Assembly (NCBI GenBank): GCA_025558095.1 | Contig: JAIVFI010000015.1 | Span: 682,001-746,000, forward strand | From: Hyaloraphidium curvatum SAG 235-1 | Lineage: Eukaryota; Fungi; Monoblepharomycota | Direction of reading: 5' to 3' | Length of the DNA stretch: 64,000 nt | In this document: positions 15,004 through 17,520 of the stretch, one piece after another | Position numbering within the stretch: the stretch's first letter is position 1 | Layout: every line of letters starts with the position of its first letter | Notes under the pieces: model-generated | The model's input: the letters and a program-made list of their open reading frames with translations, nothing else | The model's database searches: none | What the model was told of the DNA's origin: nothing | Translations under genes and position numbers: made by a program

Positions 15004-15059
15004 AGCCGGAGCGGTTTAGCCTGCGATCGGTGGATCGCAAAGCCTCACTCGCTCCGGCT
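15004..15059 (-). promoter_or_regulatory. Stem-loop beginning 6 nt 3' of the Sec UGA (SRE-like)
   Basis: Perfect 10-bp inverted repeat AGCCGGAGCG/CGCTCCGGCT (15004-15013, 15050-15059) enclosing an inner stem TGCGATC-CACC-GATCGCA. Confidence 0.5.
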
Positions 15060-17520
15060 TATCCTCAGCAACCAGAGACGGTGGCATCCTCACCGCTGCT
15101 CTTGGTGATCTTGAGCTTGATGACCTCCTCGCTGAGGGCGAAAGGTGTCAAAAACGCACGAAACGAACGAAGCAAAGGCAGCCACGCACCTAGTCGACGG
15201 GTGGATGCCGATGGTGTTGGCAAACTGCTCGCGGGTCGCGCCCATCCTCATGGCGACCGCGTACCCCTGCGTCACTTCGGCCGCGTTGGGTCCGACTGCG
15301 ATCATGGTCAGAGGAGTGCCGCGCAAAGACCGCAAGCGTGACCCACGGTAGTGGAACCCGACGACCCTCTCCTTCTCGTTCTTGGCACACACCAGCTTGG
15401 CGTAGCACGCGTTGTCCTCCCGGTGCGGCACCGTCCACTCGAGCGGCTTGAACATGCCGTGGTAGACCTCCACCCCGGCCTCCCCGTACCGCGCGATCGC
15501 CTCCTCCTCCGGCAGCCCGATGCAGCCGTACTCGATGGGCGTGAACACGGTCGTGGGGATCATGTCGTAGTCCACCCCTTCGGTCGAGTTGGTGAAGAGG
15601 CGGCGGGCGAGGAGCTTGCCCTGGTGGATGGCCAGAGGGGTGAGCTCGGGGTGGCCCTCGACGATGTCGCCGAGGGCGTAGATGTTGCCCTCGGGGTTGC
15701 CGGTGCGTTCGAGGTTGTCGGCGGGGATCTTGCCGGACTTGGTGGTGGGGACGCCGACGGCGCCGAGGTTGACGGAGCTCAGGTCGGCGTCGCGGCCGAT
15801 GGCGACGAGCACAGTGTCGAACTGGTCCTGCGGGTACGAACATCATGGGGGGATGAGCAAATCACTAGCACATCCCCATCCGCGTCCGGCCCCACGGTGA
15901 ACGGCTTGCCCTCAAAGTCCCACGACACCTCGATCTTCTCGCCGACCTTCTTGAGCTCCTTAGGCACGGCAGGGCGGATGAATTTGGTGCCGTGGTTGCC
16001 CATGTCTGCCCAAAGGAAGGCAAAGTCAGCCCCGCTGTCGAGCATCAGTGCCTGCCAGACACCCACACTCGGCAATCTTCTCGGCCATCTGCTGGTCGAA
16101 CCCGCGCAGGAAGATGCTCCTCGCCATGACGGTGGTATCGAACCCGAACTCGGTCAGGAACCCCGCGCACTCGAGGGCGACGTAGCTCGCGCCGACCACC
16201 AGCGTCTTTCCCGGCGCCTCGGCGAGCGAGAACAGGTCGTCGCTCGAGATGGCGAGCTCCCAGCCGGGCACGTCGAGCTGCTTGGGGCGGCCACCGGTGG
16301 CGACGACGACCTCCTTGGCGGTGATGTTCTTGGTCGACTTGGGCTGGTCCGTCTTGCGGTCAAAGGTGGTGCAGGCGACGGTGTGCGCGTCGATGAAGGC
16401 ACCGCGGGCGTTGAAGTACTCGACGTTCTCGTCGCGGAGGGCGACGCGGTAGCCCCAGTTGAGCGATCCGATGTGGTCTGTGGGATGGAAGGAGCCAAAG
16501 CTGATGAGATTTCGAAGTCATCAGCGACCATCCGAAACCCACCCTGCACGGCGGCCCGCAATGTGTCCCACGAGAACTTGATCTTCTCGTGGTCCACCTC
16601 CCAGCCAAAGTCCTTGGCGTCCTTGATCGCCTGCCCCACCAGCGCAGCCTGGTGCATGAGCTTCTTGGGAATGCAGCCGACATTGACACAGGTCCCCCCG
16701 AGCCCCCACTTGGTCCCGTGCGGCGACGGCCTCACGTGGTCCAGCAGCGCGACCTTCTTGCCGAGCTTGGCCGCCTCCCGGGCGCACGCGAGCCCGCCCG
16801 AGCCCCCGCCGATGACCGCGAGGTCGAACTCGTACTCGTGCGTCTCCTTGCCCTGCTTGAGCTTGGCCTCGAGCTCGCCGCTGGTGAATTTGGCGGCGGT
16901 CTGGCCCGAGTCGCCGAAGAAGGCGCCGTGGACAAAGACCTGCGGGACCGAGCGGATGCCGGTCATGGACTTGAGATGGTCCTGGATGGCGTCCATCTTG
17001 TCCTCGGGGAGCTTGTCGAGCTCGACGAGCGAGTACTCTGCGTGCCAAGCGAGGATTAGAGCCGATTCATTTGGGTAAGGAGGGTCGGCCAAGGGGAGGA
17101 ACCGTTACAGAGGAGAGCGTCTCCCGTCCGATGTCCGCCCCATTCCCCCGGCATGCCGCCCCTTCAGCGACTACGACACCCACTGATCTTGTTGGCATCG
17201 AACAGCGCCTTGACCTTTGCGCAGTAGGGGCACCAGCTCTTCGAGAAGACCGCCACGTCCGACCCGTCCACGAACGCCTTGACGGCGGCCGCGGGCTCGC
17301 CGGCCCACGCCGCGTTGTCGGAGGGCACCGGCGGCATCGTTGAAAATTGGTTTTCCCGGGTGAGCGACGCGGCGACGGCGCGCAGCCGCGGGAGAGCCCT
17401 GGGCGCCGCGGGCGGCGGCACGGCGAAGTGGGGGAAAGGCGCCGGAAGCCGCGGGACCGTGCGGAGGGCGCGGCTGGCGAGGAGCGAGGGGGTCGGCCGA
17501 GCGCGGGGGCGAAGCCTCAT
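15059..17520 (-). CDS. TXNRD: Selenoprotein thioredoxin-glutathione reductase (Grx + high-MW TrxR, C-terminal GCUG)
   Basis: Presequence, Grx domain (FSKSWCPYC...RSVPQVFV), FAD motif [41 protein letters not shown]|[32 protein letters not shown] at 15067-15065, TAA at 15061-15059, last intron 15132-15189. Confidence 0.95.

Follow-up and report, generated by a model that had tools for sequence, protein, structure and literature searches.

The stretch of DNA analysed here (the window) comprises 64,000 nucleotides of Hyaloraphidium curvatum SAG 235-1, positions 682,001 to 746,000 of contig JAIVFI010000015.1 (assembly GCA_025558095.1; C15:682001-746000 in our numbering), and its minus strand carries a gene for a thioredoxin reductase (TrxR) fused to a glutaredoxin (Grx) domain, that is, of the thioredoxin-glutathione reductase (TGR) type, whose second-to-last codon is UGA. 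The whole coding region (15059..17520) is divided into seven exons (17520-17184, 17037-16543, 16477-16067, 16005-15896, 15827-15347, 15295-15190 and 15131-15059) by six introns of 51-146 nt, all of them GT..AG and mostly with a GTGGGT donor, and scripted splicing of the minus strand gives a coding sequence of 2013 nt that stays in frame. A 3012-nt contig (word depth 889) assembled from the public run X1 of 2018, whose RNA nature was guessed, has zero differences from the window and lacks exactly the six predicted introns. Since it is spliced at six GT..AG introns this contig cannot be genomic DNA, and the splice pattern is observed and not merely predicted. It ends in the 3′ direction at about 14779, after which adapter-like letters follow, so that the 3′ untranslated region (UTR) occupies 14779..15058 (~280 nt) as far as the transcript reaches; its 5′ part extends ~600 nt past 17600. 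It may be noted that the initial annotation had placed here a gene with a 58-nt last intron (15189-15132), the motifs CPYC and CVNVGC and a GC-UGA-G tail. Reading and splicing of the minus strand reproduce all of these to the base, and the transcript contig uses the predicted last acceptor and frame, against an alternative acceptor or frame at this junction.

Database searches were made exon by exon, while the joined protein was used in the scripted translation, local BLAST, alignment and tree. A Grx domain split by intron 1 was found with PF00462 and TIGR02180 on exons 1 and 2 (16850..17300, minus strand, outer coordinates approximate); it contains the dithiol active site CPYC at 17232-17221 and aligns with the Grx domain of Schistosoma TGR. 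The other Pfam matches, Pyr_redox_2 (PF07992), Pyr_redox (PF00070) and Pyr_redox_dim (PF02852), lie on exons 2, 3, 5 and 6 and represent the FAD, NADPH and dimerisation domains of the class-I pyridine nucleotide-disulfide oxidoreductase fold. The redox-active disulfide CVNVGC of the FAD domain is read directly at 16673..16690 (minus strand) and is kept in homologues, and the HP...E motif of the interface domain appears as IHPSTSEE across the junction of exons 6 and 7. On each large exon the top match is the NCBIfam model TIGR01438 ("thioredoxin and glutathione reductase"; 156, 170, 213 and 44 bits), and the rough sum over exons of ~584 bits may be compared with a whole-protein cut-off of 476. 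Among solved structures, the Grx/FAD exon is closest to Schistosoma TGR (169 bits) and exon 5 to rat TrxR1 together with flatworm TGRs. The predicted product therefore has the domains and motifs of a high-molecular-weight (high-MW) TrxR/TGR as defined by TIGR01438, arranged in the Grx-fused TGR architecture, and no other gene for a high-MW TrxR is present in the genome (a 31.9-Mb, 55-contig assembly, which was also the scope of the search for selenocysteine machinery given below).

The C-terminal redox tail of these enzymes, Gly-Cys-selenocysteine-Gly, is present at the codon level only, as GGT TGC TGA GGA (15062..15073, minus strand), with TGC at 15070-15068, TGA at 15067-15065, GGA at 15064-15062 and the stop TAA at 15061-15059. 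The in-frame UGA thus stands at the position where the family is known to carry selenocysteine (Sec), and the same tail is found by direct reading in the orthologue of Gonapodya prolifera and in a metagenomic relative (L023) whose exon 5 is 75% identical. The pattern TGC-TGA-GGN-TAA is conserved among the three species, with the glycine codon GGT in Gonapodya (L022) and GGA in the metagenomic relative, so that both the glycine codon and the stop after the UGA are kept. An HMMER search against 1.84 billion protein representatives returned 4514 matches, and for most of the best 150 of these the gene call ends in ...GC, just before the known Sec position; the Gonapodya orthologue is one of them. 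The expectation that standard annotation would stop the protein at ...GC agrees with these gene calls. The occurrence of the UGA in this tail goes far beyond what chance would give, and it is almost certainly read as Sec.

Within the transcribed 3′ UTR, 148 nt past the UGA, lies a type-2 selenocysteine insertion sequence (SECIS) element (14860..14923, minus strand). The unconstrained minimum free energy (MFE) fold of 14940-14845 takes the textbook type-2 shape, with a helix I of 5 pairs, an internal loop in which AUGA (14917-14914) faces GA (14869-14868), a helix II with 12 nt in its 5′ arm, an AAA at 14901-14899 and a mini-stem of 4 bp. When both strands of the window and 17 other loci were scanned with strict settings, this element was the sole match. 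A looser scanner, which let in branched false positives and missed two of the elements described below (those of SPS2 and of the metagenomic relative), was used for the background rate only; it gave ~1.4e-5 per nt, or ~0.004 expected in a UTR of 280 nt. The metagenomic relative has a SECIS at the same relative place, where the sequence differs and the pairing is kept (in helix II, for example, a G-C pair is replaced by A-U and another by U-G, and helix I is different). Also, the core of the SECIS of the SPS2 gene of H. curvatum is near-identical to that of the TGR gene in its AUGA, 12-nt arm, AAA and mini-stem. RNAalifold on these three elements predicted 17 pairs, of which 5 show compensatory changes. 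The element is called a SECIS on the strength of our own scan, fold and comparison. A covariance model built from the same three sequences was rejected as an independent validation; it recovered its training sequences (82.7 and 69.2 bits for the two in the genome) and otherwise weak matches of at most 24 bits. The weak matches scoring 19-24 bits, all on the minus strand, are C20:296079-296172, C8:361890-361964 and C30:527666-527731. Of these, the C20 and C30 cases look SECIS-like by eye (AUGA, an arm of 9-12 nt, AAA), and the C8 case lies ~2.7 kb from the gene for SepSecS.

A second structure, a very stable hairpin, directly follows the UAA and begins 6 nt past the UGA (15005..15058, minus strand). 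Its outer stem of 9 bp is separated from an inner stem by an internal loop (GUGA/AAAC), and its MFE is -40.1 kcal/mol (z -6.1; 0 of 200 shuffles equally stable). In the metagenomic relative (L023:1084-1122) the outer stem and GUGAGG are identical and the apex is different and shorter, while in Gonapodya a larger hairpin with GUGAGG is found in the same place (L022:4600-4690; z -4.5 and -5.2). It could be argued that this hairpin, rather than the AUGA element, is the functional SECIS, the downstream element being secondary or redundant. Its extreme stability and the position kept in three species would fit such a role; in Gonapodya, moreover, the hairpin has GUGA on its 5′ side and AGA on its 3′ side, and neither by eye nor by script was a canonical AUGA-type SECIS seen in the 3′ flank of that gene. 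A SECIS was also found in only 5 of 16 fungal selenoprotein genes (Mariotti et al., bioRxiv 10.1101/314781). But the 3′ side of the loop reads AAAC in the window and in the metagenomic relative and holds no GA, so the sheared G.A/A.G quartet of a SECIS cannot form and we do not read the hairpin as one. The downstream element, on the other hand, is fully canonical, is conserved with compensatory changes and matches the SECIS of SPS2, and a SECIS role of the hairpin in place of that element is thus very unlikely.

The AUGA element being taken as the SECIS, the hairpin may possibly be a helper of recoding that resembles a Sec redefinition element (SRE), or a relic SECIS. To our knowledge no SRE has been described for any TrxR mRNA, although the search for one was not exhaustive. 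The SRE of SELENON and SELENOT is a conserved stem-loop that follows the UGA after a few nt, and both its stem and the spacer matter for Sec insertion (PMC8704476). The present hairpin is like it in its stability, its short distance from the UGA on the 3′ side and its conservation across three species. It is unlike it in that the UGA of the TGR gene is the penultimate codon, which places the hairpin in the 3′ UTR after the true stop, and it has no sequence similarity to the SRE.

The Sec machinery was searched for in the genome as the check that the initial annotation had proposed for Sec decoding. One tRNA-Sec was found (78.2 bits, cut-off 47); it has a UCA anticodon, a 9-bp acceptor stem, a 4-bp T stem and a T-run a few bases downstream. 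SepSecS is present with matches of 199, 64 and 27 bits. SPS2 (C2:990562-991939, minus strand) has an in-frame UGA at its catalytic ELKG-U-GCKV and a type-2 SECIS ~55 nt past the stop; by its sequence it is another selenoprotein gene, and one that would be broken up in standard annotation. For eEFSec, the specific fourth domain was found through PF21131 and scores above the cut-off, and the G motifs are of the EFsec type. Its locus (C1:403000-408000, L017) has a GC content of 57% as compared to 67% in the window and consists of many short exons. The top match of the selB model was not this gene but the mitochondrial IF2. A candidate for PSTK has a P-loop and a DDNMYYSSMR motif, and its matches are limited to two PSTK models; from these features it is probably PSTK. 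A second tRNA-SeC (tca) reported by ARAGORN at C21:461821-461911 (L002) was rejected, since in Rfam it scores as an ordinary tRNA whose variable arm is long (43.7 bits). It has an insertion of 13 nt after the anticodon position and is probably a tRNA for Ser or Leu that contains an intron. Of this machinery, tRNA-Sec, SepSecS, SPS2 and eEFSec are clearly present and the PSTK candidate is weak, while SBP2 was not found in the genome with the L7Ae profile PF01248, whose sole match in a long open frame is the ribosomal protein L7A.

Taken together, we are highly confident that the locus holds a single high-MW TGR-type gene with a Gly-Cys-Sec-Gly tail, orthologous to the Sec-containing TrxR of Gonapodya, in which UGA is recoded through the eukaryotic Sec pathway and a type-2 SECIS. 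In such a scheme the tRNA-Sec would be charged by way of PSTK and SepSecS, SPS2 supplying the selenophosphate, and would be delivered by eEFSec, the recoding would be directed by the type-2 SECIS in the 3′ UTR, ~150 nt downstream, and the stable hairpin 6 nt past the UGA may assist it. By analogy with the solved TGRs, electrons would pass from NADPH to FAD, then to CVNVGC and on to the Cys-Sec tail of the partner subunit, from where they would reach either thioredoxin or the enzyme's own Grx domain and glutathione.

Some of our results weigh against this reading. The PSTK candidate scores far below the family cut-off, and SBP2 is missing from the PF01248 matches as stated above. Transcript support consists of a single assembled contig, and that its run is RNA was a guess, though the contig is spliced at all six introns. 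Three in-frame ATGs (17634, 17520 and 17337) compete as the start of the gene, and the glutathione-linked activity of the enzyme is deduced from its domain architecture only. Also, a search of 14300-15300 against all 4227 Rfam families (E<=10) gave no SECIS and only chance-level matches to the hairpin. We do not take this silence of Rfam as evidence against the SECIS, because the unconstrained fold shows the canonical features. It would nevertheless be in line with the UGA being an ordinary stop, so that the enzyme ends in ...Ser-Gly-Cys as a truncated, Sec-less reductase, which is the product that standard gene calling yields and the form annotated for the Gonapodya orthologue and for most homologues. 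We regard such a truncated enzyme as highly improbable. An ordinary stop does not account for a glycine codon and a TAA kept beyond the UGA in three species with a synonymous difference (GGA/GGT), nor for a canonical SECIS inside the transcribed UTR of a genome that encodes most of the Sec pathway and a Sec-containing SPS2. Moreover, we know of no role in the TrxR family for a tail Cys that lacks a Sec or Cys partner. The proposal of the initial annotation that this organism decodes UGA as Sec is accordingly upheld by the tRNA-Sec, SepSecS, eEFSec, the probable PSTK, the UGA-bearing SPS2 and the conserved SECIS in a transcribed UTR.

The closest named homologue of the Sec-containing enzyme is KXS13824.1 of Gonapodya prolifera JEL478, annotated as "thioredoxin and glutathione reductase". 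The description of the source as a fungus-like genome was apt, H. curvatum being an early-branching fungus, a monoblepharid chytrid (Monoblepharidomycetes), and Gonapodya belongs to the same fungal class. The two proteins share the Grx-TrxR fusion, the tail ...SEEVIKL(K/R)I(T/S)KSSG..(T/S)GC-UGA-Gly-UAA, a lineage-specific insertion TTF(D/N)RKT... and the last intron, placed within 2 nt. They differ in that their identity is 52-60%, the Grx motif is CPWC in Gonapodya and CPYC in H. curvatum, the canonical AUGA type-2 SECIS of H. curvatum has no counterpart seen in the Gonapodya 3′ flank, and a 61-residue Arg-rich N-terminal extension is new in H. curvatum. Among 30 nameable homologue representatives no other fungus was found, the other named neighbours being stramenopile, green-algal and animal, and a metagenome scan with exon 5 revealed no close relative (best identity 56%). 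In a quick maximum likelihood tree the H. curvatum and Gonapodya proteins are sisters with 99 SH-aLRT support. The tree joining this fungal pair to the animal Grx-TrxR clade had the higher likelihood and was not rejected (p-AU 0.87); this grouping was named after the tree had been seen, and the value shows consistency only. As a separate observation, an HSP70 exon of the genome matches the NCBI entry "hsp71-like protein [Hyaloraphidium curvatum]" at 100% identity, and the named match that follows is from Gonapodya prolifera at 92%.

The vertebrate Grx isoform of TXNRD1 and TXNRD3 belong to the same clade of Grx-fused Sec-containing TrxRs, and the H. curvatum protein aligns over its full length with a frog TXNRD1 isoform (P0010) and a shark TXNRD3-like protein (P0016); for exon 5 the closest solved structure is rat TrxR1, as given above. 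In mammalian TXNRD3 the Grx motif is monothiol, as opposed to the dithiol motif of the H. curvatum enzyme, which is moreover the only high-MW TrxR in its genome. That the gene is not native, being a contaminant from or a recent transfer from an animal or alga, would fit with the lack of a high-MW TrxR in typical fungi and with nearest non-fungal homologues that are animal and stramenopile (~50-55% identity), but the probability of this is negligible, given that the gene is over 680 kb away from the start of its contig in a 55-contig assembly, that its 67% GC and short GTGGGT-type introns match the neighbourhood, that its sister with 99 support is the orthologue of another monoblepharid fungus with which it shares the insertion and the last intron position, and that a tree joining the fungal pair to the animal clade is not rejected.

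The initial annotation had further proposed a flatworm-like enzyme linking the thioredoxin and glutathione systems. As regards the architecture this stands, for the domain order, the dithiol CPYC-type Grx, the TrxR module with CVNVGC and the GCUG tail are as in the platyhelminth TGRs (Schistosoma mansoni, PDB 2V6O/2X8C; Echinococcus, 5W1J), with Schistosoma TGR as the best solved match of the Grx/FAD part. The identity to flatworm TGR is ~50% only. As regards the physiology the likeness is partial. No canonical glutathione reductase (GR) was found in searches of the one 55-contig assembly with TIGR01421 and NF004776, which gave cross-matches only, and in this H. curvatum is like the flatworms. 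The best GR-like match (C34:40527-41879) was rejected as an intronless bacterial-type NF004992 FAD oxidoreductase (761 bits) with a 50-residue N-terminal extension, and three others (C1:1423969-1425365, C38:31358-32365 and C3:328377-329845) as dihydrolipoyl-dehydrogenase-like. The genes of glutathione synthesis are present, multi-exon and matched over full profiles (gamma-glutamylcysteine ligase, GCS, at C38:190883-192437; glutathione synthetase at C40:181281-183103), and as the same method recovered these two multi-exon genes a normal GR gene should have been seen.

But the TGR-type enzyme does not stand alone as disulfide reductase, as it does in flatworms. A low-MW TrxR of the fungal/bacterial type is encoded at C14:466425-467513 (plus strand) in four exons, with CAVCD and a match to positions 7-300 of TIGR01292 (~315 bits summed). 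Flatworms have neither GR nor another TrxR, whereas H. curvatum keeps this CAVC enzyme next to its TGR. From presence and absence of genes in one assembly, the TGR may be the route from NADPH to glutathione, but it would not be the only thioredoxin reductase. A stronger proposal, in which the Sec-containing Grx-TrxR is the only such route, the flatworm-like system has been retained from the opisthokont ancestor and recoding of the penultimate UGA depends on the SRE-type hairpin acting with the SECIS, is put forward tentatively, and we consider it rather doubtful.

The 5′ end of the gene has features of its own. The first 61 residues (17338..17520, minus strand), which are covered by the transcript contig, contain 11 Arg, 0 Lys, 0 Asp and 1 Glu and by this composition form a possible presequence; the next in-frame ATG is at 17337-17335. 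This Arg-rich stretch may be a mitochondrial targeting peptide, or 17337 may be an alternative start. On the same strand, 140 nt upstream of the start of the TGR gene, an open reading frame (ORF) of 244 amino acids with a CPGC motif is located at 17662-18396. It has no Pfam match, and a protein-language-model atlas groups it with TlpA/redoxin-like thiol-disulfide oxidoreductases (score 0.96). The transcript contig continues from the TGR gene into this ORF, whose product is possibly a redox partner or simply a neighbour of the TGR. At the other end of the gene, short contigs identical to window positions 14700-15022 occur in two metagenome runs of 2025 (X3, organism not given, and X4, a freshwater metagenome), and H. 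curvatum or a near-identical strain is therefore present in environmental samples.

Sec machinery and selenoproteins are known from a few non-Dikarya fungi, and the Gonapodya prolifera orthologue has been described as a Sec-containing, animal-like TrxR (Mariotti et al., bioRxiv 10.1101/314781). A survey mapped 137 early-diverging fungi for Sec use and counted 11 Sec-encoding genomes, and Hyaloraphidium is in its data set (Amses et al. 2022, PMC9457484). In our literature search no paper was found that ties Hyaloraphidium to a Sec-containing TrxR or discusses the Grx fusion in fungi. The type of enzyme is thus already known from Gonapodya, and H. curvatum is a further member. What it adds is a second, independently sequenced monoblepharid with a Sec-dependent, animal-type TrxR, here with a transcript-confirmed structure and a textbook SECIS. 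This strengthens the view that the common ancestor of fungi and animals had both Sec and the Grx-TrxR fusion, and that most fungi have lost them. It also calls for a correction of annotation, as standard calls end the protein two residues early and thereby remove the catalytic residue. The conserved hairpin next to the UGA becomes a candidate recoding helper at a penultimate Sec codon. If the missing GR is real, H. curvatum would be a free-living model of the linked thioredoxin-glutathione system, which in parasitic flatworms serves as a drug target.

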